From contig NIVC01000289.1 in assembly GCA_002269645.1 (NCBI GenBank), positions 1 through 64,000 of the forward strand: a stretch of 64,000 bases of DNA, read 5' to 3'. A program made the translations under genes and the position numbers. The notes under the pieces were generated by a model that was given only the letters and a program-made list of their open reading frames with translations, ran no database searches and had not been told where the DNA came from. Within the stretch, counting starts at the first letter, position 1. Every line of letters starts with the position of its first letter. Below, one piece after another: positions 13,746 through 55,945 of this stretch. This DNA comes from Macrostomum lignano. Taxonomy: Eukaryota.

Positions 13746-16700
13746 TATGGCAGAAGATAAAAGTCGAAAAGGAGAGATTGATTCTCCAATCAGAGACATG
13801 ATTGATGAGATCAACATAGATCCAAAGATGTCAACAACTAGCTCATGTTCTGGTAGAATTGTAGTCTACCAGGTATGTCTATTAGCTTTTAAAGAGTGTT
13901 TTCTTTGTTTTCAATATCCTAGATTTAAAACCTTGAATATTCTTGATTATCAACTTAAAATTGTTTTAGAAGCTTGAAAATATTAGGAAGACCAACTGCA
14001 ACTGGCTGCTGGTGCTTCATGAGCCAATTAACCTGGAACAGTTGCAGGACAGCTTGAGAAATGTCACAACTGGTGGCATCGTCTTTGCAAAGTTTGAGCC
14101 CTTCATTCTGCATTGTCAATGCGCTGATATGGAAACGGCTAGGTGTCTGGTAAAGCTTGTTTTTACTTTGTCATATTACCCTTTTCAGAACTTTTTTGGC
14201 TTCTAATCCTAGACTCCCTTAGCCAGCCTCTAAGGGTTCCCAGATCCCGAGTTGCTGCGCCAGGCTCCCAGATCCCGAGTTGCTGCGCCAGGCTCCCAGA
14301 GTGTCAGTTGGTGGGCCAGCTTCCCAGATCCGCAGTTGCAGGGCCAGCCTCCCAGATCCTCAGTTGCTGGGCCAGCCTCCTAGATCCTCAGTTGCTGGGT
14401 CAGCCTCCCAGATCCTCAGTTGCAGGGCCACCCTCAGCTTCCCAGATCCTCAGTTGCAGGGCCACCCTCAGCTTCCCAGATCCTCAGTTGCAGGGCCACC
14501 CTCAGCTTCCCAGATCCTCAGTTGCAGGGCCAGCCTCCCAGATCCTCAGTTGCTGGCCCAGCCTCCCAGATCCTCAGTTGCTGGCCCAGCCTTCCAGATC
14601 CTCAGTTGCTGAGCCACCCTCAGCATCTCAGATCCTCAGTTGCTGAGCCACCCTCAGCATCTCAGATCCTCAGTTGCTGAGCCACCCTCAGCATCTCAGA
14701 TCCTCAGTTGCTGAGCCACCCTCAGCATCTCAGATCCTCAGTTGCAGGGCCACCCTCAGCATCTCAGATCCTCAGTTGCAGGGCCACCCTCAGCTTCCCA
14801 GATCCTCAGTTGCTGAGCCACCCTCAGCATCTCAGATCCTCAGTTGCTGAGCCACCCTCAGCATCTCAGATCCTCAGTTGCAGGGCCACCCTCAGCTTCT
14901 CAGATCCTCAGTTGCAGGGCCACCCTCAGCTTCCCAGATCCTCAGTTGCTGGGCCACCCTCAGCTTCCCAGATCCTCAATCTTTCAAGCAATTCATGTTG
15001 ATTTTGCAGTTGATCTGCGGTCTGAACAGTGGTTTTCGTGAATCAGGAATCGTTGTGGGCAAAAATGACAGATTTACAGTGGTAAGCAGGTTTTTATCTA
15101 CAAATAAAAAAGTTACGCATTGCAGTTATTCATGTAAATGTATGCCTCGTTTACATATATTTGTCTGTCCAATTTTCTAGGCAATCAGATCTTCACAAAT
15201 TATGGAAGTGCCACTCACCAACAATAGCGGCAAAGTAATTGTTCCTGATGAGGTATGAAACTCAGCTATTTGGGTTAAAATGTTTTAACGGGTAAAAATT
15301 TTGAAACTGAACATTTGAATGTCAAGAAGTCGCGTTGCTGAATACGATGACTGACTAAGTATTTGAATTGATCTGTTTATAGGAAAGACGTTTTTGCTAA
15401 AATTGATCACACATACTGTCCTAACCCGGGTCGGTTTGGGTGCCCAGTCTCGAGTACGATATAATATACGTAATATAACAGGCGTAGTGACGCTCTCTCT
15501 GTACTTTTATGGATACGAGCAGGCGTGACGACGCTCTGCGATAATAGGTCAATCTTTCTAGTGTTGTGACACTCAGAGTTCACGCTGCGGCTCGAGGTGT
15601 GATGGTACACTCTCGAGTGCTTCTAGTTTCGATACTGTTCTGTAGGTTGTACACACTAAATAGAGTAACCGATACAGTACTACAATAAGTACTACAAAAG
15701 TACGCAGGGCGTGGGCAAAACGCAGAGTCACGCAATAAATACCCCAAACCGTGGGGCAGACGGCCCCACCGGCTAAGCAACTACCAAAGAAAAGTGACTG
15801 GCCGCGCCGGCCAGCCAATCAAAACCCCGCCTAGGGGGAGGGGCCGCACCCGCGCCAAAGCTGGCTTGGCCGCAGCCAACCAGCCCTGAGCACGGGGCAG
15901 GGGCACGGCTGGGGAGGGGCACGCGCAAAGCCCGGCCGCCGGCCAGACCCTGCCACGCCCGCCAACCCCCCTAGCCAGCCCCAAAGTGCAACGCGCCCTG
16001 CCAACCGACAAGGGCGCATGCACTACAATACCGACAAACTATTCTTAGTATAGTTAATATAGGAAGACTAGCAATCTAAATTTCTCAATCCCGTTGAGAA
16101 AGCAACAAAGAACGATTAATCCTAACTCTCCCTTTGATGCTTGGCCTACCAAGAACTCCCATTTGACCCTTAAAATCTGAGCAACCACCATGAGCCACAG
16201 CATTTCGATTTCAGCAATTCCCCCCTATGAGCCATGGCATCTCAGCAATTCCCCCTATGAGCCATGACGTCTCAGCAATTCCCTCTATGAGCCATGACAT
16301 CTCAACAATTCCCCCTTTGAGCCATGACATGTCAGCAATTCCCCCTATGAGCCATGACGTCTCAATAATTTCCCCTATGAGCCATGACATCTCAGCAATT
16401 TCCCTATGAACCATGAAATCTCAGCAATTCCCCTATGAACCATGACATCTCAGCAATTCCCCTATGAGCCATGACATCTCAGCAATTTCCCTATGAACCA
16501 TGAAATCTCAGCAATTCCCCTATGAACCATGACATCTCAGCAATTCCCCTATGAGCCATGACATCTCAACAATTCCCCCTTTGAGCCATGACATGTCAGC
16601 AATTCCCCCTATGAGCCATGACGTCTCAATAATTTCCCCTATGAGCCATGACATCTCAGCAATTTCCCTATGAACCATGAAATCTCAGCAATTCCCCTAT

Positions 16701-22548: not shown

Positions 22549-25500
22549 ATGGTAAATGAGTTTTCCCATGAGAAGGTAAGTTCTTAGAAATTTTAAATAT
22601 TCTGCTATAGATTATTTAATTTTTTAATGCTTCCATTCTTTATAAGCGGGTTTAAAAAACTTTTTTACCTTGAAGGCCAGATATGAAACCTAAGAGCATG
22701 ACTGCTGGCCAGAAAAGGGGAGAGAGGAGAGGTAATAGAGCAAAGAAGGTAGATGGGAGAAATGAGAGGCAAGAGAATAAAGAAGAGCTGAGTGACAGAG
22801 TAGAGAAGAGATTAGAGCCAAACCTTGAGCTAATTGGTAAAATCATTATCGAATTATATACTCCTCAATTTAAATATGATTTGCAATATGAAGCATTAGA
22901 TATATCATTTTAGAGCTTTTGTGCGGGAAAAATCGTCCATTGGCTTTGTGTAGGGCCAGCCCTAAAGTCACAGAGAGTGTACATGTCTGACGATTAGAAA
23001 ATCAGAGGCCGCTGTACACCCTGTGTGAGCCAGGTGTCACTGCTTGTGCAGATATAATTAGAATCGCAGTTCTCTAATCTCTATACAAAAACTATGAAAT
23101 TTAACAACCCCAGAGCAAGCTATCGGCTTCAATCTCGTGGATCATCTCTAAGGCCTTCCCGCCGCAGACTCCAAAGCCGGACATTTACAATCTGATATTC
23201 GACGCCAATACCGAATGCCAGCTGACTCATCACGTGATCCGCGGCCTCACGTCTAACAATCTCTATTCGGCCGCTTGCAGTACCCTGTTCCCGAATTCTC
23301 GCCAGGAGACTTGGACAGATCACGATTGCATTCTGAGAAATCTTCGTCGCAGAGGCATCCCAGTGTTGGACGAGAAAGGATGCCAGATTACTCAGACTGT
23401 TTTGCAACGCGACGAGGGTGGAAATTTGCACGTGAGTTTTAAAGGACACTTTATTTTGTACTTATAGTAGCTGTATGCATGCTTTACTAACTTCACATTT
23501 TGTGGCTTGACGATTGTTGCAAATATGATCTTTCTACTTGAATAAATTAACTTTTGGTGTTAGAGATGCAATGAATATGCTTTATCCAGATTTAAGCATG
23601 CGATTTACTCTACTATAAGTAGAAAAATAAGTAAAATAAAAGAAGAATATGAAAATGTGATTCAATACCAGATTTACTTTGCGATTTCCTCTACTATAAG
23701 TAGAAATATAAGTAAAAGTAAAAGAATCATACGGAAAATGTGATCCAATACCAGATTTAAGCATGCAAGTTCCTCTACTATAAGTAAAAAAAACAATCAT
23801 CTTCGCAGAATCGCCTCTCAACTGGCCGTTCTATGTCATTCGCATCGGCTGTGGGTGCCGCTTATGTATTAGTTATCTAAAATCGTCCATATATTTTGGT
23901 GAAGGACTTCTGGTTGTTGAAGATTATAACGGAGATTATATCAAATAGCCCACATGGTTTTATGGTTTCCAATTTGTTTATTTGAATTCAATAGATTATT
24001 TGAAACTACTTACAAGACATGCATTCAGTAGTATGTTTAATATCTATACCTATAAAAATCAAAACTCTGTGTGTCTGTGGACAATTCTAGCGATATAAAT
24101 GAACATTATTATCCAACTGGGCCTTTCTTTAAGAGAAAGAATTCACGGTGATTGGATTTCGCACATGTCAGTTTAATGCATATAAACCTAGAGTTATGAA
24201 AAAATTACCATAAAAAGAGTTAACATAAAATTATTGTATAATTCTATAATATCTGTTTGCAGCATCCACATGCGCCATCCTTGATGCGCTGCGTTATGCC
24301 AGGCGATTCGGCGAATCAAAATTTGTCCTTTCCATTTGTGAGCTTAACTTATTCGTTTTTATCATTTATTAATCAGAGTAATAAATATCGTACTCTGCAG
24401 CCTTTCAATCACTGGATTTGAGCTAATTTATATCACCTTGCGCATGCCATCTTCATCTGTCAGTCTACAATTGACTAAAGTGGAGAAAATTCATAAATTG
24501 TAGCTATTTTTTATTGTTTGACTGTTGGGAGTGGGTTTACCTTTAAATTACTTTTATTATTAAAAACATGCTATACATTTTCTAAAACTTCTCGTAGCAT
24601 CCACTTAAATTAGAATACAGTCTAATTTACAGAGATTTGCGAAATGATTGGACCTGATCAAACGACATTTAAGACAAACGTTTAAGACGTTTGCTTTAGC
24701 AGATATTCCTACAAAGGCAAACAGACATCAAGACTGAAACACTAGGACACATCAAGACCAGGACACTAAGACACATCAAGACCGTGACACTAAGGCACAT
24801 CAAGACTGGGACACTAGGACACATCAAGACCGTGACACTAAGGCACATCAAGACTGGGACACTAGGACACATCAAGACCGGGACACTAAGGCACATCAAG
24901 ACTGGGACACTAGGACACATCAAGACCGGGACACTAAGGCACATCAAGACTGGGACACTAGGACACATCAAGACCGTGACACTAAGGCACATCAAGACTG
25001 GGACACTAAGACACATCAAAACAAGGACACTAAGACACTTCAAGACTGGGACACTAAGGCACATCAAGACTGGGACACTAAGACACATCAAAACAAGGAC
25101 ACTAAGACACATCAAAACAAGGACACTAAGACACATCAAAACAAGGACACTAAGACACTTCAAGACTGGGACACTAAGACACTTCAAGACTGGGACACTA
25201 AGGCACATCAAGACTGGGACACTAGGACACATCAAGACCGTGACACTAAGGCACATCAAGACTGGGACACTAAGACACATCAAAACAAGGACACTAAGAC
25301 ACTTCAAGACTGGGACACTAAGGCACATCAAGACTGGGACACTAAGACACATCAAAACAAGGACACTAAGACACATCAAAACAAGGACACTAAGACACAT
25401 CAAAACAAGGACACTAAGACACTTCAAGACTGGGACACTAAGACACTTCAAGACTGGGACACTAAGACACATCAAAACAAGGACACTAAGACACATCAAA

Positions 25501-28500
25501 ACAAGGACACTAAGACACATCAAAACAAGGACACTAAGACACTTCAAGACTGGGACACTAAGACACTTCAAGACTGGGACACTAAAACACATCAAGACTG
25601 GGACACTAAGACACATTAAGACGGGTACACTATATTTTTAACAAACGTACTCCATATTTAAAAAGTATTTTCTGGCCGTCTGCCTATTTCTGTAGCATTT
25701 TTGCCTAGTTGTGTTAACTATTTGTCCAAAATTTAGATTCTTAAATCTTCATTTTAAATCCGAGCAGTTTTTAGATTCATATGTTAAAATGATCTTAAAT
25801 ATTAAATGATTTAATTTCTAAACATATCGGTAGATGGTTGTTTGTTTCATAAGTTTTGTTCCTCGCCTTGAACTCGAATCCGCAGAAGGCTCACCTGGCC
25901 CTGATTGACGGCCTGATGATTGCCTACATCGAGGAGTGCGCCAGCAGTCAAGAAATCGAAGCAGCGGTCGCTCGATTCTGCACCAGAACCCCGCCGCCTC
26001 AGGTGCCCAAAGCTACACCCGAGGCGCTCGACCTGTGGATTCGCGAGGCCAATGCTGCCGCTTTGAAAGCTTTGCCAGTGCCGCCCGACCGACTGTTGGA
26101 CGCGTCGGCCCGATTAGCTTTGCTAATAAATTTTTACGCTCCAGACCTGCTCCCGGTCACTACGGTTGATCTGAATGGCAATTTGTCCTGGCAGAGAAAG
26201 GTAGACAATTGGAGTAGGGTGCGCGATTTCTGCGCCTCCTACCTGGCCGATAATCCGTTCGTAGCTCACCCGGCCGATATTGTCCGGTCAGCTGATCGGC
26301 TAAAATTAAATCTCACGTGTTTAACTGCGGAATTGTTTCGCCACCTGGAGATTAGCGGCAAGTTTAAACCGTCTTATCAGATTTACCGGACTTATCCTGC
26401 TATGCAGCAGCAACAGCAGACTCCTACGCCGACTCCTAGAAGACAATCAGCTTCTTCTATTAATAATTTCGATTATCCTTCTCAGCAACATCAGCAGCAG
26501 CAAGCGGCTAATTATGCTAATGAGCTTCATAATCAAAACAACGTTGTTGAAGAAGAAGAGGACGAAGAGGAAGAAGAAGATTTTGCAACACCGGAAAGCG
26601 AGGAAGCTCCGCCGTTTGTTGCCCAGCAACAGCAGGTTATGCCAGGTGAAGCGCAAGAAGATGATGATGAAGAGGAAGCAACGAGTCTGGCTAGCGAAGC
26701 TCGCAGCGACGATTCAAAAACAACTTGGCTAGATTATGCTAGGAAAACTGCTCAAAAAAATACAGCTGGCGATTTAGCCGCTAGAGGCGTTGCTAGGCAA
26801 CAACCGAATTCGCAGCAGCAGCAACAGCAACAACAGCAACAATCGCAACAGCCAGTCTCCAATCTAGATTTGAAAATTCGTCTAGAAATGAAGAAGCGCC
26901 AAATTGAATTGGAAAAGAAGAAATTAGCCAGCCAGAGTAAGCGTGACAGAGAAGAGAAGGGCAGAGAGATTTTCATGCAGCTGGTGCAGCGGCAGGCAGC
27001 AAGCTCGACGGCGTCTGGAACGTCGGCAGGCGCTGTCGCCACTTCAGCCAGCGGTAGCGGAGGCGGCAGCGGGCCCAGCAGCGGCCCGGTAAGTGTTAAA
27101 GAAGTTGACGCCGCCTATAGCGATAGGTTAGACATGCTGAATAACAGCTTGACTAGTTTGCAGGATGAGATTAAAAAATTATCGCTGCAGCAAGAGCGAG
27201 CTGCTAGGGCCAGTCTGCAAGCTTTGCCCGAGCAGCAACCGCCGAAGCAGCAGCAGCCTCAGCAGCCGCCTCAGCGTGCTCGGGCCACTTGGCGGCAGCA
27301 GCCTCATCCTCAGCAGCCGCAGCATCTACCAAGCTTGCATCATCATCAGCAGCAGCATAGGCAGCAGCAGTATCACCATCTGCCTTTCCCGGCGCTGTCC
27401 ACTTCTGCTGACGGAGACTCTAGCGGCGGCGGTTTTCGTTTATCTCCAGTTGCAGATGCTGGCCCGTCGTTGCATATTGGCTCTTCTGCTCCTAGTAGCA
27501 GCAATAAAAAGCCTAAACAGCAGCAGCAGCAGCAGCAGCCGCAACAATCATCGCATTCGTCTGACTTGACCGTTGTGTCTCTGGCTAATAGTCACGGCAC
27601 TGTGGTTCTCGATCGGCCCTCCGAGCATGTTGCTTCTAGTACACAGAACCAATCAGGTCAACAGAAGCAGCAATTTAAGCAGGAAGAGGCTTTGGAACAG
27701 CAACAACAACAACAACTAGGCTTCTTCCTGGCCGGCGAAGAGCCAGCCGAAAAGGAAGATCTCCACAATGTCCAAATCAACAAGAACAATTTCTTTATCA
27801 GTTTTGATGACGACGGAGCCGGCGCCACTTCGGCTGCCGCGCCAAGTCCGCGCCGAGCCAAACGGAAGCCACAGCTGTCCAGCTCGTTGCGCTCTTCGGC
27901 TACTAAAAACGGCGCCACCACCACTGGCGCCAATCCGAATTCCAGCGCCGGCTCCGGTTCAGTCGATGCATCCGTGTCCTCGACTTCATCAGACAAAAAA
28001 GAGAAGGATGCCGCTGTCCCGGTTGCTACGGCAGACTCTTCGGAGAATGAGAAGACTAGGAAATCGCCCGTGCTGCAGAACACCGCCTTCATCGTGATTG
28101 ATGACGATAAGGAGGCTGAGAGAGCCGCTAGAATCAGAGAGTTGCAGGTGAGACGCTTTGATGAATCTCAACCTCTGTCATTTTCTTATCTCACCTCATT
28201 GCCATCCAATCTCACCACTCAACTCCATCCAGTCTCACTCCTCATCAATCTTCTCTGATATTAGCCTCGGTCCATCGCTATTCAATCACCGCTACGAAGC
28301 CACCTGTCTCATCCCTAAGAAGTCGCACCCCTCGCCCATCCAATCTGACTCCTCACTCATCCAATTTTACCCCTCTCTTATCCAATCTCACTCCTCGTCC
28401 ATCCAGTCTCACCTCTTCTCCATCCTTTCTCACTTCTCGTTCATCCAACCCCACCCTCACCCATCCAATCTCATTCTTTTGCCCATCCAATCTTACCCCT

Positions 28501-40113: not shown

Positions 40114-40848
40114 TGAGAATGATATAACAAACTAGTTTTTTTTTCATTTAAGTGTTTACTGTACGATATACAGCATTGGGTTATTTTTCAAGTTTTAGAA
40201 ACATTTCTGCATTCATTGGGATCAAAAAAGCAAGAATAAAAATTAAAATTAAGTTTGAACATTGATTTATTAGAAAATGTGTGCATAAATCTCAAACTCC
40301 CCATCTTAAATTAAGGGGAGGCAGCATAGAGACACGCGGGTGGATTTAACTACCCGGCTTTTTAAAAGGATGCTGACTTGTAGATGCACTCGTCGATGTA
40401 CTGTGTAGAGCAGGGCGAAAGAGAAGTGGTTTGAGGTGGGAGAGAAACGCTGCCTTCCCCCACCCTTCTCTCTGCTTTCTTCCCTCGGTTTAAGATCGGC
40501 GGCCCACCTCTTCGGGGCTGTACAATCGTGCAAAGCAAACTGTTGGATAGGAGAGGCATACAGAACACAGAGAAGATACTAAAGCAGATTATTGGTTCCC
40601 AGAACCTCGCTACCCAGCCCAGAGAGTGAGGAATGACGGAGAAGGGGGTAGCTGACACCTAGATAGAGAGAGAGAGTTTAGCTCGAAGACTGTAAAGCCT
40701 AAAACATGTATATTAAAGCTAGTGAATGGCAAAAACATTTTTCGGAAGTATTGATTCGGTGCTAATATTAGAAATCATGAGCACACGCGGGAAATACGAA
40801 TTCGAGCTGGCAGTCTATGATGAATACTTCTACTCAGCCCTGCATTGT

Positions 40849-43800
40849 ATGTCGGCAAACTCGATGATGACGCATTCAATTGCAGCCGGACAACTGGAGC
40901 CGCCTCCGCAGCAGCATTTGCAGCCGCATTTGCAGCAGCCGCAGCAAAATCAACAACAATCGCAGCAACAGCAGCAATTCTGGCCTAGTAATCCGTTACT
41001 AGAAGATTTTGAAAGTCAACTATCCGAAATTGCATTGTCGAGCAGTTTTTGGCAAAGTTTTCTATTACCTCTGCAGCCGCAGCAGCAACAACAGGAGCTT
41101 CCGCCTCCACCGCCGTTCTACCAGTCTTCTTCCACATTGGATTTCACGGGAACAGCCGAGCAATTACAATCCTTGTCTAATTGCTACACCCTATTACACG
41201 AGGCTAGTAATAGTAGATCCGCTACTAGTAGTAGTACTTCTAACGATAATATGCAACGCAGGCGATCCAATAGTAGGCGGTACGCTCAGCATCGTCAAAT
41301 GATTCCTTCACCTCCGCCTCTGCAACCGTCAGCTTCGGCGTTTGCCTCAGAAATGCCGCATCATGGTTCTACAGCGTCGCATCTGGGATATCAGCAGCAG
41401 CAGCAGCAGGATTCTAATGCTCCTATGCTAGCCGCGCTAATGGCTGCTAATGCTCAATCTAATCTGCTGAATCCTTCGCCTCTGGATCACCAGCCGCCGC
41501 CGCCGGCCCACCAGCAGCCGCAGCAGCATCAGCGCCGTCAGCCTGGCGTGCCAACCGCTCTACAGAATGCCGCTACAGCCAATGGCGGCTTGTTTACCCA
41601 TTTGAAAGTGTCTACAGCGTCTGAGCAGCATCATAACCTGCGTAGCCATGCTGGTAGTTCATCATCTAGCCAGCAACAGAATAATTTGCGTAGGCATCAT
41701 CAACAGCAGCAGCAGAGACAAGCTAGTAGTAATAATCAGGCTTCTTCTTCTCATTCTCTACATCATCATCAGCAGCGGCAGCAGCATCAACAGACGTCAA
41801 ATCCTGCTCTGATGGCCTGTCTGAATGGCGCTGGCGGCGGCGGGATCGGTCGTGCCGATTCCACTGTTGGCGCTGGTAAGTTGTTGTTGACTACTAGCTA
41901 GTAGCGATTTATCATAAACGAATGCGTATGCAGAGACCAACTATATTTGGCTGGTGAAAGTATGGGTATGCTGGTTTATTGATACAGTGACCTGCAGAAA
42001 TTGGCAGAAAAAACCTGATGGATTGATGTGACAGACGAAATTCGTTAAAGACGTTACCGTGACAAGAATCGCTAAGGAGTCATTTCAAACACCTCACTAC
42101 TGAATCTAGCGACCTTGTGGCGACACTTGTGACCTTTTAACGTCACAAACCACTGTAATGTGACGGACTGGAGTCACAGAGTTGCAGGATCGTGAAAAGT
42201 TGTTATAAATGCGAAATGCGATTCTGAATTCATAAACTGACGCAGATGCGCTTTAGACGCAACTCATTGATTCTACAGCGACTCTGGCACGATTCTTACC
42301 CGAATTACGACTTTTTGGCGACTTGCACCGTGACATCATCTCGTCGTTTTATTGTCGTCTAGAGCCACTTTTTTCCTATTTTACCTGTAATATCTGCAAC
42401 AATCACACTGGGACGCTTCTTGGCCTAGGCACCGTTTTCACTGGGACAAATTATTGGATTGATGGAGTGGTGACAGACAAAAAATTGAACAACTGACAGT
42501 CAACTAATGGATATTTATACTGATTTAGTTGGCGCATAAATCAGAGCTGTCTCAAAACCAGTCTCACGCACTCCTATTCTCACACCATCCCGCAGTTCAC
42601 CACAGGAAGCGGTCCGGCGATTTCAGTTTCCCAACATTCGATTCGTCCTCGGCTCAGTCAGTTTCATCCTCAATTTTTGGCGGCGCCGCCTCTATTGTGG
42701 ACGAATTCCTGTCGGGCTGCTCGTCCTCATCTTTTAGTCATCATAATCACCATCACCAGCATCATCATCATCATCATCATCATAGCTCGCCGTCTTCGGC
42801 TAGGCCTGACAGCGTACTGCCAGAAGAGTTGCCATTTTTTGAGCACCTAAACACTTTGTTGAAGCCTACATTATTGCGTCCTAGCCGATCGAACGGGCAT
42901 AATCAGTATCAGCAGCAGGTGAGAATTTTTTTTCATTTTAGTTCGGTATTTACGAGTATTAAGTATTTCTTTGAGAGTTTTGCTTAGCGAGTGATAATCT
43001 CAGTGTTGCCTGTAGAATTCAGTAGGTATCTAGAGGACCCAGATCCCAATGGGAGTTGTGAGGGATAGATCCCAATGGGAGTTGTGAGGGATTGGGATCC
43101 CAATGGGAGTTGTGAGGGATAGATCCCAATGGGAGTTGTGAGGGATAGGGATCCCAATGGGAGTTGTGAGGGATAGATCCCAATGGGAGTTGTGAGGGAT
43201 AGGGATCCCAATAGGAGTTGTGAAGGATAGGGATCCCAATGGAAGTTGAGAGAGATAGGGATCCCAATGGGAGTTGAGAGGGATAGGGATCCTAATGGGA
43301 GTTGTGAGGGATAGATCCCAATGGGAGTTGTGAGGGATTGGGATCCCAATGGGAGTTGTGAGGGATAGATCCCAATGGGAGTTGTGAGGGATAGATCCCA
43401 ATGGGAGTTGTGAGGGATAGGGATCCCAATGGGAGTTGTGAGGGATAGATCCCAATGGGAGTTGTGAGGGATAAGTATCCCAATAGGAGTTGTGAAGGAT
43501 AGGGATCCCAATGGAAGTTGAGAGAGATAGGGATCCCAATGAGAGTTGAGAGGGATAGGGATCCCAATGGGAGTTGAGGGATAGGGATCCCAATGGGAGT
43601 TGAGGGATAGGGATCCCAATGGGAGCTGAGTGATAAAGATCCCAATTGGAGTTGAGAGGGATAGGGATCCCAATTGGATTTAAGAGGGATAAGGATCCCA
43701 GTGGAAGTTGAGAGGGATAGATATCCCAATGCGAAGTGAGAGGGATAGAGATCCCAATGGTATCTGTGAGAATAGTAATCCCACAAGCAAGCATACAAAC

Positions 43801-45896
43801 CTTAAAGATTTAGTATACTTAGATTAGGTTTTAACTGTTTGAATTTTGATGCCATACATATAAATAACACAAAATGATAAAGCAATTATTTTGACTTCAG
43901 GCCCACTGCGATTTAGAGTTCGGCATGAATCCGCAGCAAGTCAAATCAGTACTATCAATGCGCACTCGAGACTTGGCCTCTGGCCGCACCGAGTACGCCG
44001 TACAGGTTTTGATTCGTTGCTTCCACTCGGAGGCTGGCACGCAGCCAGACGCGTTTCCGCCTGGCGTAAATCTGACCGTGAACAGTCAGCCTGTTCTGGG
44101 CCTGCCTGCTCCGCTGCCCTGCCGGCCCGGATCCGATCCTGTCAGGCCCGGTCGGCCTGTAAATATCTCCGGTGAGTGACGTAATAGAAATTTGCTGCGA
44201 CATTTTGACGAAATGTATCGATTTATAAAGCGTGATTTTTAGGCGCAGAAAAATAACGCCTTGCTAGATATTACCGAAAATTCAAAACGAAGTACTCGGA
44301 ATCGGGGCATCCAAACTTTTTCAATTATCACCTTGAAATTTTACCTAAATTTTCAGACAAATTTGAAAGCTACATGTATTGAACGTATATTTATAGATTA
44401 TTTTCTCAGCGTATTTTATCTATATTTCTACTGTCCGTAGTGTAGAGAATTAAATTAGACATGTTCATAGGTAGCTCACTTACCCTTTTCTTTTCAATTG
44501 CAACTACAATATACAACACGAATGTCAAAGATTGCCTACTTAAGAGTAGCGAGAAATGACTTTTAACCGGTGTGTGTCCATGGGCAGTCAAGACTAGCTG
44601 AAGTCATCAAGAAGTCATCAAACAACGCCAACCCCCATAGTAACCGCTCCTAACTCTAATCACGCAGGTCTCTGCCGCCTCTCTGCCAGCTCCCAGGCGA
44701 ACAATCGTATCCGCGTCAGCTGGCTGCACCGACCATCCGGTCCGGGCTACTGCCTCTCCGTGTCCCTCGCTCGCGTCGTATCGTCCAATGACCTCGCCAA
44801 TCGGCTATTGACCTTGCCAGGTCGGGTCCGGCCAGCCAGTCAAACTCAGCGCCAAATTCGTCAGTTACTGCTTGGCAACGGTGACGATGACGAGGACGAC
44901 GACGATGCCATGGTTGCTATGACAACTATAACCGCTTCGCTGCGCTGTCCGTTGTCCTGCGCCAGAATCCAATTGCCCGTTCGATCCGACGATTGTCGTC
45001 ACGTGCAGTGCTTCGACGCCCGGACATATTTGTCCATGAACGAGCGACGGGCCACCTGGCGATGCCCCTGCTGCGACCGGCCAGCACCCTACGCCAGTTT
45101 GCACGTCGACGCTCACTTTCAATCGGTGCTAGCCAATGCTCCTAAAAGCGTCGATGTTGTCCGTTTCCTTGACGACGGAACCTGGCAACCTGCTGGGGCC
45201 AACGCAGCATCCTCGTCGACCTCTGCATCGACGGCCGCCTCCGCCTCCACCTATAAAGGCTCATCTTCCGCATTGAGAGGCGCCAATTTTGACAGCGTTG
45301 TCATTGACGACGATGACGACGATGACAACAGCTACAGCGCAATAGACGAAGCGCCGCCAACATTGAAAAGGCAAAAGCGCAGCGACAGTGTCGACGACTC
45401 GCCATCGACAATTTGCAACGATCTCGACCCGGGCGATGTTATCGTGGTCGATTTGACCGCCGATTCCGATTCCGGCGGCGACGGCAATGGCAGAGATTGC
45501 GACGATTCAAGCGACAGCCAGTCGGATACGGACACTTACAATAATGGCTACGGTTGCGCCTACTCCTCGGGAGCTGTGGGTGTTATTGTCACTCCGGTAC
45601 AGTCGCCGTCGCCATCGCCGCCTATTCAACCGTCGTCTCATGGCGGCGGTGCTTCGTCATCGTCGAATTCGTCGTCTTCAGCTGCAGCTGCAGCACCAGT
45701 GTCTGTCAGTACTACAAGTAGTATCAATGGTAGCAGCCATAGTTTTCCTTTGTCTCAAGACCTGCCAACCTATTTTGGCAGTTATCCTACATTGCCTATA
45801 CACTCGTCGGCGATGCCCCCGCCGCCACCGCCTCCGCCACTCCCAATGGCGGCTCCTTCATTGTCGTCATCAGCTGCTATGTTTCCGTTTGATTGA
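40849..45896 (+). CDS. PIAS: PIAS-family SUMO E3 ligase paralogue A (Q/H-rich N-terminus, PINIT, SP-RING, SIMs; no SAP domain seen)
   Basis: Exons 40849 (or in-frame ATG 40726/40777)-41875, 42596-42918, 43901-44171 and 44668-45896. LPFFEHLNTLLKPTLL and QVLIRCF...DAFP...RPVNIS (PINIT domain). SLRCPLS...CRHVQCFDA...TWRCPCC (SP-RING). VIVVDLTADSD (SIM). Confidence 0.9.
42054..42410 (+). repeat. Dispersed repeat (copy 1) in intron 1 of PIAS paralogue A
   Basis: Collinear blocks shared with 53370-53800: gacaagaatcgctaaggagtcatt; gacgcagatgcgctttagacgc; gtcgtctagag; ttcctattttacctgt. Confidence 0.8.
43030..43790. repeat. Intronic 27-28-bp minisatellite GGGATCCCAATGGGAGTTGTGAGGGATA
   Basis: About 27 tandem units in intron 2 of paralogue A. 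Source of the spurious minus-strand SQLPLGS ORFs. Confidence 0.96.
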
Positions 45897-45952: not shown

Positions 45953-47568
45953 GATTTAAGAAAGTTTTAGACAACAAAAGATTATTTTTTAGTTTACTAC
46001 AGTCTAATAGTCTACTTTAATAAAATTTAGTAGTACTAACAATCAGCCTATTGTTAGATTTTATCTGTTTTATCTTGCCACTTCTTTTACGAGCCTGCTT
46101 ATCACTCTCTAGGGCCAGGCTGTCTGAACCGTCGATAATTTTATTGCCTTTAAATGGGGTGGTGGGGAGCGCGCGTGACTTGTTTTGTACTTCTAACTGA
46201 CTAGCCAATCAGAAACGAGAGATAAAAATAGAATGTAGAGAGGGTGAGAATACAATATTAGATAACGGGTTAATCGTTCGCGCCGTCTGTCCTTTCTCTA
46301 CTACCGCTTACCCTATTTTTATTGACCTCGCCAGCACTGTCCTGATCAATTAACTGGAGTGGTTAGGCTCTGATTCAGCCGGGTGGGTGTTTAAAGTGAA
46401 CTTTTTAAGTAGAGGGAATGAAAAACAAAGACAGTAGTTAAATATGAGATAATTAAGTGGAGTGAAAGCGAACCGCCACGTTGTCCAAGACTAATTAAGA
46501 TCATACTGATAATTAGTCACTTGCGTAGTGTATAGCAAGTGTTATTACTCTTAGCGCTACTGCAAACGCTTAGGTACAATTGAATTGCGATGATTTTCTG
46601 CCTCTAGCTAGAGTGTACATCGACTTCATTATTGATTGTTGGTTGTTAGTATCAGTAGCTTTCAAAATACTTACTTTTACTTTTGCTTATGTTTTTCAAA
46701 ACCGATGACAGATTACTATCTGTCGCTAACTAACAACTTCTAACTTCTTCTTTAGTAGTACTTCTAAATTGGCTTTTGTAAACTCGGTTTCTCCCTCCGC
46801 TTTGTGTTCTGTTGCAATTGCAACTTGCACAGATGATAAATAAACTGTTGAATTGAATCTGACATCTCTATTCTCTGTTGTCATTTGCTCGTTGCACCAC
46901 AATTCCAATAACAATATTTATACCTTTCTATCCGATTAAACGTCTTAAATTCGTATATAGATGCTTTATATCCTCAAATGTTGTCAAACTAAACTCCTGT
47001 GCTACTATAGGTAATTTACTCTGCTTGTTTTCGTTTGAAATGGAACCTCTGGCAGGCACCAAAATTTTCATGTACCGAGCTTTTTTGCTGTTTTTTTTGT
47101 TATATGGCCAACATCAGCTGTATAATATGTTTTTCAATAAGCGCGTTTTCTACTTCAGATTGTTTTCGAATAAAATTTCTTTTCACATGTCATGTGTTTA
47201 AATTATAAAAATACTTAGGTTCAGCTATTTTAATATCAGATAGAAGCGCCTTCTCTTGCTCGACTGCTCTGCTGCTAACATTTATATTCAACTCTTGTGA
47301 ATTTAATAAATTATTATATGCTGCATACTCAGATTTTTTGTATGTTATTGCTGGCTGGCAACAGTTTTTTGTGTTAATTTATTTATTTGGTACTACTCTA
47401 TATTAAAATGTTTAAATCTTCTACGGCAAAAATTTAATGCCAAGTTTATCAAATCTACTTAATACTCGTATTTAGACAAGCGCAACTCACTGCAAGGCAA
47501 CGCCCAGAATAATAGTGTACTCATACTCAGATTTCTGCCTATTAACCCATTGAAAATTGTGTCCCAAA

Positions 47569-47897
47569 TGTACGCACTCAGTGTCCACCAACCTTGAAAT
47601 AGTCTGTCTCAAATGTCGGCACCCAATTCCCACCAGCCCCTTGAAAAGTCTGTGCCAAATGTACGCACTTAATGCCCATCGACCCATTAAAAAGTCTATC
47701 CCAAATGTACGCACTCAATGCCCATCAAACCTTTAAAAAGTCTGCCCAAATGTACTCACTCAATGCCCATTAAAACCTTGAAAGTCTGCCCCAAATGTAG
47801 TACGCAGTCAATGCCCATCCAACCTTTGAAAAGTCTATCCCAAATATACGCACTCAGTGCCCATCAAACCCTAAGAAATTCTGCCTAAAATGTATGT
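47569..47897. repeat. Degenerate ~45-46-bp tandem repeat (TGTACGCACTCAATGCCCATC...AAAAGTCTGCCCAAA), about 7 copies
   Basis: Directly visible diverged units. Confidence 0.85.
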
Positions 47898-48687
47898 ACT
47901 AGACGCTTTTAACCAATAGACACTGCGATATTCGATGGGTCGTATTTTACTGCTTAAAATATTTAACTTTTTTAAAGATGAAATATAGTCAAAGCGAAAT
48001 TCATGTCAGAGTGCAACTGTGAATTGTTACTTATATCAATGTGTTTAAACATTCATTCAAGGATATCATTTGGCTTTTGTCTAACGACTGAAATTTTCAA
48101 CCAAGTTAGTTGGGTTTCTGTGTGTATGTATCTATCCATACATATGGTTACTTTTGCACTGCTTTACATTGTTCTATTTTTATAGGCAACTCATTGCTTC
48201 TTGTTCGTTAATTTTTTTGAAAATCGTCGCTTTATTACGGCAAATTTTGTTGGTCCTTACTAAAGCCAACTTGTTTGCCACCTGTAAACCCTACTGTATT
48301 GTGCGCGTGACCTATGTAGGCACTGTCCATATATTGTGTTCTGTCGCTCTAAACACATTGCATGCTCTCTATTGTTTTCCCAAACTCCCGTCTTTGTGTT
48401 TCTGCTTGCTTTGTACAACTTACGAGCTACTATTCCCGAATATGTTTTTTTACTTACGAGTAACTCGTACCTATGTAAATAAATTTCATACTCTTTTTAT
48501 TGGATTGTGAATGTCTAACGAAATTTTAAAATGCCGTTTAATTTTAAGTTGAAAAATAGATGCTTATATCGTGTATGGACTTTTATGCTAATGAAAGAAA
48601 AGAAATCGTTACATTTTTGTCCTCGATTTAACACATTATATTTACAAAGTCATGAATATTCTCTAGTATTTGTACCCAAATCTTGTA

Positions 48688-49685
48688 TAGCACTGAGTAT
48701 GGGTATCCCTGAGTCTCCCATAGCACTTGAGCATGGGTGTCCCTGAGTTTCCCATAACACTGAGCATGGGTATCCCTGAGTCTCCCATAGCACTGAGCAT
48801 GGGTGTCCCTGAGTCTCCCATAGCACTGAGCATGGGTGTCCCTGAGTCTCCCATAGCACTGAGCATGGGTGTCCCTGAGTCTCCCATAGCACTGAGCATG
48901 GGTGTCCCTGAGTCTCCCATAGCACTGAGCATGGGTGTCCCTGAGTCTCCCATAGCACTGAGCATGGGTGTCCCTAAGTCTCCCATAGCACTGAGCATGG
49001 GTGTCCCTAAGTCTCCCATAGCACTGAGTATGGGTGTCCCTGAGTCTCCCATAGCACTGAGCATGGGTGTCCCTGAGTATCCTATAGCACTGAGCATGGG
49101 TGTCCCTGAGTCTCCCAAAGCACTGGCACTGAGCATGGGTGTCCCTGAGTCTCCCCATAGCACTGAGCATGGGTGTCCCTGAGTCTCCCCATAGCACTGA
49201 GCATGGGTGTCCCTGAGTCTCCCCATAGCACTGAGCATGGGTGTCCCTGAGTCTCCCCATAGCACTGAGCATGGGTGTCCCTGAGTCTCCCCATAGCACT
49301 GAGCAGGGGTGTCCCTGAGTCTCCCCATAGCACTGAGCAGGGGTGTCCCTGAGTCTCCCATAGCACTGAGCAGGGGTGTCCCTGAGTCTCCCATAGCACT
49401 GAGCAGGGGTGTCCCTCTGTCTCCCATAGCACTGAGCATGGGTGTCCCTGAGTCTCCCATAGCACTGAGCATGGGTGTCCCTGAGTCTCCCCATAGCACT
49501 GAGCATGGGTGTCCCTGAGTCTCCCCATAGCACTGAGCATGGGTGTCCCTGAGTCTCCCATAGCAATGAGCAGGGGTGTCCCTGAGTCTCCCATAGCACT
49601 GAGCAGGGGTGTCCCTGAGTCTCCCATAGCACTGAGCATGGGTGTCCCTGAGTCTCCCATAGCACTGCCACTGAGTATGAGTGTC
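48688..49685. repeat. 33/34-bp minisatellite GAGCATGGGTGTCCCTGAGTCTCCCATAGCACT, about 30 copies
   Basis: Homogeneous tandem array ending about 190 bp upstream of the paralogue B start codon. Confidence 0.96.
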
Positions 49686-49873
49686 CTTGAGTATTTAATA
49701 GCACCAATGCTTCTCTAAGTTAATTTCATGTAGCATTTTATAAAATTTTTAATAATGAATATGGTTATTGTCACTATGGATTTAGTACATGTGCTGCAGT
49801 ATATTTATATTAATATGTATAATCCCTCTAATCGCCAACCCGCAGAATCAATTCGTTCAATCGCGTATTGCAT

Positions 49874-52800
49874 ATGTCTAAGGCTAGCAAACGTGCCAAG
49901 AAAAGTACGATAGTATGCCCCTACTGTGTTAGTAATCGGCCACAGAATCAGTTCAAGGGTAGCTTTGACGATTTTTCAATTCACCTGCTATCGATTCACC
50001 CGGCCAATGCTCACAAACTGGAAACTATTCGTCGTTGGCACCAAGCCAAATTGGTTGATAGTAAACTATGCAAATTTTGCGACAGGTTCGAACTGAATCT
50101 AATTGCGCATTATCGATCTGCTCATCTGAGTCAGTTTGCCCAGCAGAAATCTGTTCTTACTGGAAAACATGCTACTAAAACTGCCAGACTGAAAGCTGCT
50201 CAACGTATTGACGAGCTTCGAGCATATATATTTGATGATAAACCGTTGCCACCATATCCGCCGAGTAGTGAGGTTACTAATGGTGAGTTTAGTTGCTATT
50301 TTTTATTATTCAAGTGTTTTTTTTATATATTTCTGCTATAAGTAAATTAGTTGACAAAAAATCAGTAATATTAATTCTATACTGCATTTTTTTAATATTT
50401 CTACTATATGTTTAAAATTTAATAAAATTAAATAATAAATAAGAAAATATTGCTTTCTTATTTTTTATTTCTACTATAAGTAGAATAGTTAATAAAATCA
50501 ATTTTATTAATTTTATACGTACAATATTTTGTTATTTTTACTGTAAGTATAGTGTCAAGGAAATGCTAACTTTAATCTATATGTACCTTTATTTATTTTA
50601 TAGATTTTTTATAGATCGAAAATTATTGAACGAAATTTTCGCCTCAAACGAAACCACTTGAGCATTTTGCTTTTTGCTTCTAACACACTCAACCCATCTC
50701 TATGGTAAACAAACATTAACAAGTCTAAATAAATTGTCATATAATTGATTGCCTACGCAGGCCCCAACATCCCGTCAACCTCGGCTGTTTCGACAACTAC
50801 CGCTGGTCTGTCGTTCTCCCAGCAGCAGCAGCGGCCGCCACGGCCAATCCAGCACAGAATTTATATCAACTACGACGAGGATAGCAGCGGCGAAGAGAAC
50901 GATTGTAGCGTCGTTATGGGCGATATCTTTGCCAACAATAACGGTATTAGCAACAGTTTACCTGCCATAGACCCTGCTGTGGCTGCCGCTGCCGACTCAC
51001 TGCTGCATCCGGCTGTGCTGCCCAATGAGCTGACATTTTTTGAGCACGTGGCCACTTTGTTGAAACCTACAGCTCTGCGCCCTACACGACTGCACGGCAT
51101 GCTGCCGCATAGGAAAACTGTGAATCTGCATTCAAATGATTGCTGCTTACAGTATCCTTGTTTTCTAATCTCTTATTGTCTTTTGTAACGTGTCTCTTAG
51201 CACCCTTATTGTCTTCTCAATATTTCTCCTCTCCCTTCCCTGTTTCCCTCTCTCTTTCGCTGTCTCTCCCCTCTCTCTCCCCTGTCTCCCCTCTCTCTCT
51301 CCCCTGTCTCTCCCTCTCCCTCCCCTGTCTCCCCTCTCTCTCCTCTGTCTCTCCCCTCTCTCTCCCCTGTCTCCCCCTCTCCCTCCCCTCTCTCCCCTGT
51401 CTCTACCCCTCTCTCTCCTCTCGCTTCTCTGGCTCTCCCTCTCTTTCCCCTGTCTCTCCCTTGCCTTTCTCCCCTCTCCCTCCCCTTTCTCTTCTCTTTC
51501 CTTCCTCTCTCTCACTGTCTCGTCCCTCCTGCCTTCTCCGGGCTATCTCACAACATAGTTCATCTCAAATTACCAGACTTTCCCTGTCTTCATTTTGTTA
51601 TCTTAAGTTAGTAAATCTTCTCTACTTAACCTCTCTTTCTCAAATTAATAGGCTTTTAATCTCACTATAACCTGAATATAATTTTTAACCCTTAACAATT
51701 CTCTTTCCATGCTAGGCGTCGTGCCATATGGAGTTCTGCCTCACACAACAGCAGGCGGAGTCCGTGGCTTTGATGCGCACCAGAGATCCAACCACCGGCC
51801 GGTCAGTTAATGGCATGCAAATTCTGTTGCGCTGTTTCAAATCCGAGTCCGGACCGCAGGCCGATTCGTTTCCGCATTGCGTCAGCTTTTTTGTCAATAA
51901 TCAGCCGGTAATGGGACTGCCCGACCCGCTGCCTTGCCGGTTTTCCGGCGCCGATCCGATTATACCAGGCGCGCCTATCGATATTTCCGGTAGGCTGGCA
52001 GCCCTGCCGAAGAATGATTTCTGAATACTTTGCGAACTGAATTAACTAAATCATAGAATGCACAGGGGCGTGCAGGGAATCCCCAAGCAACCGTAGAGTG
52101 TACATTAGTGTCAGAGAATCCCCAGTCGACCATAGCATGTACATTGGCGTGCAGGGAATCCCCAATTAACCGTAGAATGTACATTGGCGTGCGGGGAATC
52201 CAAATCAACCGTAGAATGTACATTGGCGTGCAGGGAATCCCCAATTAACCGTAGAATGTACATTGGCGTGCGGGGAATCCAAATCAACCGTAGAATGTAC
52301 ATTGGCGTGTGGGGAATTCCCAAATCAACCGTAGAATGTGCATTGGCGTGCGAGTCCGCAATCTACCGCAGAATAGAACCTTTAACACATTCACCCGCAG
52401 GTCTCTGTCGAGTTGGCAATTCTGCTATCAATCGTCTGCGAGTGAGCTGGCTACACCGAATCCTGGGCGCCGGTCACTGCCTGTCAATCACTCTGGCTCG
52501 TGTTGTCACGCCCAACGAGCTCACTAAGCGGTTGCTATCCAGTTCAAATAAAGTTCGCTCCGTCAGCGAAACTCTGCAACAGATTCGTCAACTGCTACTT
52601 ATTGACGATAATAGCAACGGAGCGGATGCGGCTGTTGCCATGACAACGCTAACCGCTTCGTTGCGCTGCCCGTTGTCGCGAACCAGAATCGAGCTTCCAG
52701 TTCGCGGCCTTGATTGTCGTCACGTGCAGTGCTTCGACGCCCGGACCTACTTGTCGATGAACGAGCGGAAGTCCACCTGGCGGTGCCCCTGCTGCGACCG

Positions 52801-53269
52801 GCCCGCCCCATTTGCCAGTCTTCGCGTCGACGCTCACTTCCAGTCAGTGCTTGCCGACGCCCCTGTCAACGTTGACTCCGTGCGTTTCCTAGACGACGGC
52901 ACCTGGCAACCGATTGAAGATTCAACACCGACTGTTGGCAGTTCCGAATCCAGCGTAGCAGCGCCGGTAGGCAAGTCTAGCCTGGTGATTGACAGCATCG
53001 CCATTCCCGACGATGAAGATAGCAATGTTGAGAAAAAGGGTCCAAGCGTTACGAACAACAACAATAACAACAAGAACAAGCAGTCAAAGCGGCATGACGC
53101 ATCAAAGACGCATCATGAACATCAGGCTGTCGCTCCACCAGCGGCTAAGCGAGGCCGCTTAAGTGCGCCCAGCCTTGGCAACAGTCACCATCGGCGACGA
53201 GCTGCGAGCTCGGTGGAGCAGCTGCAGCAGCATGTGCTAACCGTGGATCTCACTGGCGACTCCGACTAA
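49874..53269 (+). CDS. PIAS: PIAS-family SUMO E3 ligase paralogue B with two N-terminal C2H2/BED-like zinc fingers, PINIT, SP-RING, SIMs; no SAP domain seen
   Basis: Exons 49874-50282, 50761-51119, 51716-51989 and 52401-53269, in frame, with the same intron phases (1,0,1) as paralogue A. Exon 1 has CPYC-x18-HLLSIH and CKFC-x9-HYRSAH. LTFFEHVATLLKPTAL, PIDIS, intact SP-RING, C-terminal VLTVDLTGDSD SIM. Confidence 0.88.
51220..51540. repeat. CT-rich low-complexity tract in intron 2 of paralogue B
   Basis: Near-pure pyrimidine ctctccctgtctcc repeats. Confidence 0.95.
52057..52352. repeat. 39-40-bp minisatellite AACCGTAGAATGTACATTGGCGTGCAGGGAATCCCCAATT, about 7 copies
   Basis: Tandem units inside intron 3 of paralogue B (51990-52400). 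Confidence 0.92.
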
Positions 53270-54867: not shown

Positions 54868-55945
54868 GTCTGTCAGCCAGTTCAGTAGTTCATGGACCAC
54901 TAGTCACTACTACGGGTGTCTGTCAGCCAGTTCAGTAGTTCATGGACCACTAGTCACTACTACAGGTGTCTGTCAGCCAGTTCAGTAGATCATGGACCAC
55001 TAGTCACTACTACAGGTGTCTGTCAGCCAGTCCAGTAGTTCATGGATCACTAGTCACTACTACAGGTGTCTGTCAGCCAGTCCAGTAGTTCATGGACCAC
55101 TAGTCACTACTACAGGTGTCTGTCAGCCAGTCCAGTAGTTCATGGATCACTAGTCACTACTACAGGTGTCCGTCAGCCAGTCCAGTAGTTCATGGACCAC
55201 TAGTCACTACTACAGGTGTCTGTCAGCCAGTCCAGTAGTTCATGGACCACTAGTCACTACTACAGGTGTCTGTCAGCCAGTTCAGTAGTTCATGGACCAC
55301 TAGTCACTACTACAGGTGTCTGTCAGCCAGTTCAGTAGTTCATGGACCACTAGTCACTACTACAGGTGTCTGTCAGCCAGTTCAGTAGATCATGGACCAC
55401 TAGTCACTACTACAGGTGTCTGTCAGCCAGTCCAGTAGTTCATGGATCACTAGTCACTACTACAGGTGTCTGTCAGCCAGTTCAGTAGATCATGGACCAC
55501 TAGTCACTACTACAGGTGTCTGTCAGCCAGTTCAGTAGTTCATGGACCACTAGTCACTACTACAGGTGTCTGTCAGCCAGTTCAGTAGATCATGGATCAC
55601 TAGTCACTACTACAGGTGTCTGTCAGCCAGTTCAATAGTTCATGGACCACTAGTCACTACTACAGGTGTCTGTCAGCCAGTTCAGTAGATCATGGACCAC
55701 TAGTCACTACTACAGGTGTCTGTCAGCCAGTTCAGTAGATCATGGACCACTAGTCACTACTACAGGTGTCTGTCAGCCAGTCCAGTAGTTCATGGATCAC
55801 TAGTCACTACTACAGGTGTCTGTCAGCCAGTCCAGTAGTTCATGGACCACTAGTCACTACTACAGGTGTCTGTCAGCCAGTTCAGTAGATCATGGACTAC
55901 TAGTCACTACTACAGGTGTCTGTCAGCCAGTCCAGTAGTTCATGC
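54868..55945. repeat. 50-bp minisatellite GTCTGTCAGCCAGTTCAGTAGTTCATGGACCACTAGTCACTACTACAGGT, about 21.5 copies
   Basis: Exact 50-nt period, no unique spacers, only about three recurrent variant positions. Confidence 0.97.

Follow-up and report, generated by a model that had tools for sequence, protein, structure and literature searches.

Gene B of Macrostomum lignano, a flatworm, encodes a PIAS-type SUMO ligase paralogue and is a genuine fusion, present in public annotations, in which an N-terminal unit containing two Cys-Cys-His-His (CCHH) motifs is joined to a PINIT/SP-RING cassette without a SAP domain. The gene is located in a 64,000-nucleotide stretch of M. lignano DNA (assembly GCA_002269645.1, contig NIVC01000289.1, positions 1 to 64,000), hereafter the window, and coordinates are window positions unless a locus label (L001, L002 or L005) is named. 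The balance of the evidence leans toward B being an intact, expressed and Macrostomum-specific SP-RING SUMO E3 ligase of the PIAS/Siz type, in which the N-terminal SAP domain is absent and the two-finger unit functions as a portable targeting domain. The same unit, referred to below as the module, is also found at the N-terminus of a SET-domain protein and of an unannotated open reading frame in the same species.

Gene structure and the SP-RING cassette of paralogue B

The window has a eukaryotic character with short exons, AT-rich introns and numerous satellite arrays, and the best protein matches of the gene B model are M. lignano proteins (BOX15_Mlig... proteins of GCA_002269645.1 and UniProt entries). 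Gene B consists of four exons on the forward strand with GT/AG at all junctions, and the in-frame model contains 1911 nucleotides and encodes 636 residues. Exon 1 (49874–50282) comprises 136 stop-free codons and one additional base, begins with MSKASKRAKK and encodes the two-finger module. The exon 1 frame is free of stops across positions 49832–50338. Intron 1 (50283–50760, 478 nucleotides, AT-rich) starts with the donor GTGAGT at 50283 and ends in CAG with the acceptor AG at 50759–50760. The intron is in phase 1, and the junction codon is GGC (Gly). Exon 2 (50761–51119) encodes a low-complexity and poorly conserved linker and the beginning of PINIT. Exon 3 (51716–51989) encodes the PINIT core, with PIDIS in place of the PINIT motif at 51974–51988. 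Exon 4 (52401–53269) encodes the end of PINIT, the SP-RING (52658–52801) and two motifs similar to the SUMO-interacting motif (SIM; 52982–53023 and 53234–53266) and terminates with the stop codon.

The in-frame, phase 1 GTGAGT splice onto the PIAS cassette, which the original prediction had proposed, is present in public protein models in addition to having canonical splice sites. The 636-residue model is 100% identical to UniProt A0A1I8G3V7 (P0014) and matches GenBank PAA86255.1 (P0011) save for a nine-residue open leader in the GenBank protein. Two public annotations therefore already contain the fusion junction. Exons 1 and 2 are joined in the same way in six public proteins, three from GenBank (P0001, P0010 and P0011) and three from UniProt (P0012–P0014). 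Two further genomic copies of B (P0001 and P0010), which are 98% identical, keep the junction sequence ...SSEVTN-G-PNIPS..., as do their UniProt counterparts.

The GenBank models are 5'-partial. P0010 and P0011 start with INSFNRVLHM and P0001 starts with INSLNRVLHM, and the first codon, at 49847, comes right after an AG dinucleotide (49844–49845) that follows a pyrimidine-rich tract. In the GenBank annotation, which was derived from a genome-guided RNA-seq assembly, mapped trans-splice and poly(A) sites defined the gene ends (PMC5730564). Because the partial models begin exactly after this AG, a spliced-leader acceptor would be positioned just 5' of the B start codon, and the segment 49844–49873 (+) is interpreted as a probable trans-splice acceptor and short 5' leader. 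The 5' end of B is thus probably at the spliced-leader acceptor AG 49844–49845.

Exon 1 was compared with the collinear copy at L001. Eight of the 409 bases differ, with five synonymous and three non-synonymous changes. Non-synonymous (dN) and synonymous (dS) divergence between these two near-identical genomic copies is 0.0095 and 0.058, respectively, with a dN/dS ratio of ∼0.16. According to our own binomial estimate, three or fewer non-synonymous changes out of eight would be obtained under neutrality with a probability of ∼0.02. The introns are less conserved than the exons, and intron 1 is richer in substitutions and indels.

Satellite arrays are located around and inside gene B (48687–49667, 54868–55944, 52052–52352, 47547–47894 and 51225–51521). 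Immediately 5' of the B start, a 33-bp unit is repeated 29 times, and downstream of the gene a 50-bp unit is repeated 21 times; intron 2 contains a CT-rich array and intron 3 a 39/79-bp array. Satellite copy numbers near B differ between the window and L001.

The catalytic cassette of B is recognized by two Pfam families. PINIT (PF14324) covers residues 226–367 with 44.4 bits against a cut-off of 27, and zf-MIZ (PF02891) covers residues 434–481 with 76.3 bits against a cut-off of 33.5 and an expectation value (E) of 1.6e-21. Residues 137–636 align over ∼300 positions with the PINIT/SP-RING regions of human PIAS3 (4mvt, E 1.6e-46) and PIAS2 (4fo9, E 2.3e-45) and more weakly with yeast Siz1 and Siz2. 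The zinc ligands of the SP-RING (C-x-H and C-x2-C) are retained as CRH and CPCC in B, compared with CAH and CPVC in PIAS3. Two candidate SIM-like segments were identified by eye, LVIDSIAIPDDEDS (residues 542–555) and VLTVDLTGDSD (residues 626–636), both similar to the VIDLT-acidic SIM of PIAS. Divergence of the cassette is very high, and in one protein search only seven proteins matched at E ≤ 0.001 (five M. lignano proteins, an unnamed JGI protein and the ZMIZ1 of a hagfish).

A SAP domain was not detected by Pfam at E ≤ 1 in the B protein or in exon 1 of paralogue A, and a loose SAP motif expression returned nothing in the six frames of the window. The lack of SAP does not exclude B from the wider SP-RING family because some members, such as ZMIZ, also lack this domain. 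The tandem paralogue A (40726–45893, +; P0003 and P0002) contains the same cassette and intron positions as B, but its first exon is rich in Gln/His and encodes neither fingers nor SAP. Exon 3 of B and exon 3 of A are 54% identical. As SAP is missing from A as well, its loss and the acquisition of the finger exon could be separate events, and the SAP loss may be older than the A/B duplication. The idea that the fingers replaced SAP therefore goes beyond the evidence, which shows SAP absent and fingers present but not a single replacement event. Paralogues A and B are same-strand tandem genes separated by ∼4 kb. The start of B seems to be a trans-splice acceptor, and the two genes could form a single transcription unit. 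Operons occur in M. lignano (PMC5730564).

The two-finger module and its relatives

The exon 1 peptide contains exactly four Cys residues, all of which reside in two CxxC pairs. Finger 1 (49916–49999, +) has the pattern C15-x2-C18-x18-H37-x4-H42 and is followed by P43. Finger 2 (50069–50125, +) has the pattern C66-x2-C69-x9-H79-x4-H84 and constitutes the best conserved stretch of the module. The two fingers are separated by a 23-residue linker. On the N-terminal side, the basic stretch KASKRAKK (49880–49903, +) reads from the sequence as a putative nuclear localization signal. On the C-terminal side, finger 2 is followed by a basic, largely helical stretch (residues 85–120; 50126–50233, +) with seven K/R and two D/E residues, and the Pro-rich motif PLPPYPPSS (50243–50269, +) is located at the module end. 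AlphaFold2 places helices at residues 85–96 and 102–120 (67–96 and 102–120 in a single-sequence run). In 200,000 composition-preserving shuffles of the 136-residue peptide, two Cx2C-x7-20-H-x3-5-H motifs were never generated, and one such motif was generated in 0.6% of the shuffles. Translation, shuffling and helix prediction thus confirm the basic N-terminus, the Cx2Cx18Hx4H(P) and Cx2Cx9Hx4H motifs and the basic helix that had been described for exon 1.

Homologues of the module were sought with HMMER in a full scan of 1.84 billion representative proteins. Besides the cluster of B itself, the scan identified one true relative, P0008, a 300-residue M. lignano protein whose N-terminus is homologous to B exon 1 (E 7e-11, 33% identity over residues 14–132). 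P0008 consists of the module and a SET domain (Pfam E 7.6e-16), and the nearest solved relatives of this SET domain are KMT5A/SETD8 (E 1e-13). The module likewise fills the first coding exon of P0008. The following intron is located seven codons later than in B and is in phase 2 rather than phase 1, and the exon structures of P0008 and B are therefore similar but not identical. When exon 1 was compared with the P0008 locus by tblastn, a third copy of the module was found in an unannotated open reading frame, ORF-X (L005 12005–12820, +; E 5e-5 against B exon 1), ∼1 kb downstream of the SET gene. ORF-X encodes 272 residues and carries the two-finger module N-terminally, together with a tail rich in Cys and Pro. 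No Pfam family matches ORF-X, and it is absent from the called genes at its locus.

A three-way alignment of B, P0008 and ORF-X shows that all eight Cys/His ligands are invariant at 30–34% identity. The conservation of the Cys/His pattern on which the original prediction depended thus extends to two distant paralogues of the module, within one species. The finger 1 spacer varies among the three copies (18, 16 and 11 residues), and the finger 2 spacer is constant at nine residues. B and P0008 have the finger 2 signature KLCxxCDxFxxNLxxHYxxxH and the tail motif PLPxYPxSS in common. The basic stretch pattern A-R-x2-A-x2-R-x2-EL and the Tyr of the Pro-rich tail are kept in all three copies, the Tyr being the only part of the tail motif retained in ORF-X. 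The KASKRAKK stretch of B is not found in the P0008 or ORF-X copies. The module is ∼125 residues long and basic, with an isoelectric point of 9.85 in B and 9.46 in P0008. On the strength of the invariant ligands, the module probably binds zinc via two CCHH sites.

The HMMER scan returned no relatives of the module outside M. lignano among the 1.84 billion representative proteins. The finger–PIAS architecture, which the original prediction did not recognize from characterized proteins, is not widespread; only M. lignano proteins carry it in this set, and no paper describing it was found. By these searches, the module represents a small orphan domain family that is flatworm-specific and outside Pfam. 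Its occurrence at the head of the SP-RING ligase B, the SET protein P0008 and ORF-X suggests that it is portable between proteins.

Other candidates were rejected. The HMMER match to P0009 (E 5e-4) is spurious, as this protein is repetitive and of low complexity. A word-indexed protein search with exon 1 alone returned nothing and missed even P0001, which is 98% identical to exon 1; this null result therefore reflects a failure of sensitivity, and negatives from short queries in that search are untrustworthy. The sole return of the word-indexed search with the module alignment was P0015 (UniProt A0A1I8J2B7, 'secreted protein'), a mis-modelled chimeric fragment in which satellite and 5' sequence of a KDZ transposase gene, out of frame, are joined to the end of SET exon 1. 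P0015 either results from mis-annotation or hints at transcription reading through the KDZ–SET gene cluster described below. In tblastn searches of the window, the queries (module, KDZ protein, SET domain and paralogue A exon 1) found no further copies.

The module does not fall into a known finger family. A whole-exon search of exon 1 gave no Pfam match at all. In the B protein, PINIT and zf-MIZ are the Pfam families that exceed their cut-offs. zf-C2H2 (PF00096) and zf-BED (PF02892) are not matched at E ≤ 10 by exon 1 or the isolated fingers (of both B and P0008 for zf-BED). The resemblance of the first finger to the BED fingers of transposases that had been suggested is thus not substantiated, and the only sub-threshold signals come from Di19/KCMF1. 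The classical C2H2 spacing (x12) is not observed in B, which has spacers of 18 and 9 residues, and a core of the F...L-x2-H type is readable in finger 2. Finger 1 of P0008 (residues 5–42) matches zf-Di19 (PF05605) with 14.3–18.8 bits (E 0.002–0.05) against a cut-off of 27.5, and B itself gives no zf-Di19 match. The P0008 N-terminus has no other Pfam zinc-finger match beyond this sub-threshold hit. In a PDB profile search, the KCMF1 finger of C. elegans and human, with the pattern VICPLC-x19-H-x4-H, ranks first at E 0.45–2.5, which is below significance. Neither exon 1 nor the P0008 module had a meaningful phmmer match among PDB sequences. The sub-threshold Di19/KCMF1 resemblance of the module is consequently treated as a set of leads, not as family membership.

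Partner and origin of the module

The catalytic cassette of B should work as in PIAS1–4. In this model, the SP-RING of B would hold SUMO-charged Ubc9 as in PIAS1–4, PINIT would assist in substrate positioning, and SUMO would be held by the SIM-like motifs. The exon 1 module, with its two atypical CCHH fingers, basic helix and PLPxYPxSS motif, would take the place of SAP. The module is read as a portable targeting domain because it also heads the KMT5A-like SET protein and ORF-X in the same species. A shared target of B and the SET protein is suggested by the presence of the same module on a KMT5A-like methyltransferase, and the module may therefore bring different chromatin-modifying activities, a SUMO ligase and a SET enzyme, to a common partner. 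DNA or chromatin is favoured as this partner because of the basic charge of the module, and would most likely be its ligand. The analysis demonstrates the gene structure, the domains, the homology of the module copies and their ligand conservation, from which zinc binding, SUMO E3 activity and the target are inferred.

Several observations weigh against this reading. No Pfam zinc-finger family reaches threshold on B. Both AlphaFold2 runs on exon 1 are of low confidence as measured by the predicted local distance difference test (pLDDT; means of 55–57), so the structural check that had been proposed for the fusion is uninformative. The single-sequence model has a mean pLDDT of 56.7 with a confident part (pLDDT 74–89) only within residues 81–120. 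The model based on a four-sequence alignment has a mean pLDDT of 54.8 and presents finger 1 as a strand-strand-helix at pLDDT 60–68 and finger 2 as a helix. A Foldseek search of the exon 1 model against the PDB returned nothing at E ≤ 0.001. Because all homologues come from one species, ligand conservation is seen among paralogues and near-identical copies, not among orthologues. The finger domain of KCMF1 reportedly serves protein–protein contacts, as seen in UBR4–KCMF1 structures. Finally, we infer the expression of B from RNA-seq-guided annotation models only.

The main competing explanation holds that the module is a protein–protein interaction domain, Di19-like as in the ubiquitin ligase KCMF1, which docks the SUMO ligase and the SET enzyme on a shared protein or complex. 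We regard this explanation as possible but clearly less probable than chromatin targeting. The family-level signals obtained for the module, from P0008 residues 5–42 and from the PDB profile search (spacer Cx2Cx19Hx4H), all point to Di19/KCMF1, and the Pro-rich PLPxYPxSS tail could be taken to resemble a peptide ligand motif. These scores are, however, all below significance, B has no Di19 match, and the module is strongly basic. Moreover, plant Di19 proteins are described as DNA-binding transcription factors, and the Di19 resemblance thus leaves the type of ligand unsettled.

A second alternative concerns the origin of exon 1, which would come from, or be shared with, a transposon through accessory genes of a KDZ element, not a BED transposase, and would have been captured by a host SUMO ligase. 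A KDZ (Kyakuja-Dileera-Zisupton) transposase gene directly precedes the SET gene and ORF-X on their strand, and the three genes form a cluster at L005 6767–13211 (equivalent to L002 2767–9211; contig NIVC01001431.1). The KDZ gene looks intact, with Pfam KDZ matches on both halves and weak CxC1 and B-box matches. A 553-bp repeat begins with the last 47 nucleotides of the KDZ coding region and recurs with 100% identity after the SET gene, and a partial copy (254 bp, 97% identical) follows ORF-X. The cluster is found on four contigs, two of which are 100% identical over 13 kb. Its organization resembles a multi-gene element or an operon-like unit. There are records of transposons with SET-domain genes and of KDZ elements with chromatin-related passenger genes (PMC12730594).

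The association of both other module copies with one repeat-sharing, multi-contig KDZ cluster, together with this precedent, makes the transposon link a real lead, on a basis other than a BED finger, and an origin of the module from a transposon is possible. Even so, we rate such an origin as doubtful, slightly behind protein docking. Exon 1 itself has no BED or transposase similarity. Searches for terminal inverted repeats around the cluster found none, only short chance-like matches, and tblastn detected no KDZ remnant near B in the window. A weak KDZ match at 15824–16042 was rejected as GC-rich low-complexity sequence. Collinearity among the cluster copies extends over at least 18 kb, with satellite arrays at its limits, which speaks against mobility, and there were no signs of amplification. 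The M. lignano assembly is polyploid-like, and three or four near-identical copies are ordinary redundancy (PMC5730564); B itself is present in three near-identical genomic copies. The SET/KDZ-cluster genes were kept in GenBank although models overlapping annotated repeats were filtered out (PMC5730564). The direction of any transfer of the module is unreadable because the copies are only 30–34% identical.

A more specific version of this scenario is unlikely. The module would be the sequence-specific DNA-binding domain of a KDZ-type transposon, used by the element on its SET methyltransferase and on a second accessory protein, and the host would have captured it on a PIAS ligase, thereby aiming SUMO-dependent chromatin silencing at that element. 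If this were true, B would be a fixed record of transposon–host conflict over chromatin marks.

It is very improbable that the fusion is an artefact of annotation or transcription, with exon 1 being a separate small gene or non-coding and the PIAS start lying downstream, since the 5'-partial GenBank models and the low-complexity, poorly conserved exon 2 that would allow it are outweighed by an in-frame junction with canonical splice sites, the same model at three genomic copies in two annotation sets and two assemblies, the synonymous excess and ligand-conserving homologues of exon 1, and the use of the P0008 module as the first exon of a larger enzyme.

Comparison with known ligases and significance

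Gene B shares PINIT, the SP-RING ligands and, as judged by eye, candidate acidic SIM-like motifs near the C-terminus with vertebrate PIAS1–4, Drosophila Su(var)2-10, C. elegans GEI-17 and yeast Siz1/Siz2. It differs from these proteins in the lack of SAP, the orphan two-CCHH N-terminus, PIDIS in place of the PINIT motif and a very divergent cassette. ZMIZ1/ZMIZ2 (tonalli) resemble B in having an SP-RING without SAP, and the hagfish ZMIZ1 is the best match of B outside Macrostomum. However, the Pfam ZMIZ GBD-like domain reaches only 13.7 bits in B against a cut-off of 26, whereas PINIT passes its cut-off, and the PDB alignments favour PIAS. The BED fingers of hAT-type transposases and ZBED proteins have the general Cx2C...Hx3-5H form in common with the module, but no zf-BED match to the module was obtained at any threshold tried. 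ZBED1 is said to act as a SUMO ligase.

A parallel to the extra N-terminal unit is plant SIZ1, a PIAS-type ligase with a PHD finger, a zinc-binding reader, upstream of PINIT and SP-RING (PMC4574183). SIZ1 retains SAP along with the PHD finger, whereas B lacks SAP and its CCHH fingers are unrelated to PHD. KCMF1 and plant Di19 (PF05605) provide the best sub-threshold match to finger 1. They have CPxC...H-x4-H fingers with long or irregular spacers, which also occur in an E3 ligase. The scores do not exceed 18.8 bits against 27.5 and none is obtained on B, the inter-finger linker is 23 residues in B but short in Di19, and finger 2 with its nine-residue spacer matches nothing. KMT5A/SETD8 (PR-Set7) is the closest solved relative of the P0008 SET domain and bears on P0008, not on B. 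Canonical KMT5A is not known to have such fingers.

Two further features of the window are distant from B. Long open frames at 457–2641 (+) resemble, by eye, a reverse transcriptase/retroelement pol fragment. An 801-codon open frame at 25853–28255 (+) follows a tandem array (24699–25638), both strands of which have several open frames.

B and its annotated relatives are already in public databases, only as 'hypothetical' or 'SP-RING-type domain-containing' proteins, and searches of the literature and supplements for the gene identifiers and the finger–PIAS architecture found nothing. What is new here is an unusual N-terminus on a known enzyme type and a small undescribed domain family. The finding covers one species so far, and the function of the module is read from its sequence. 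PIAS substrate choice is thought to depend largely on placement on chromatin, for which SAP is the usual device. B, which lacks SAP and carries an unrelated two-finger module, therefore represents a natural test of how targeting shapes SUMOylation, and the same module is also present on a lysine methyltransferase, the KMT5A-like P0008. A test of targeting is feasible in M. lignano because RNA interference and transgenesis exist in this species. The link to the KDZ cluster may bear on the trade of chromatin-targeting domains between transposons and their hosts.

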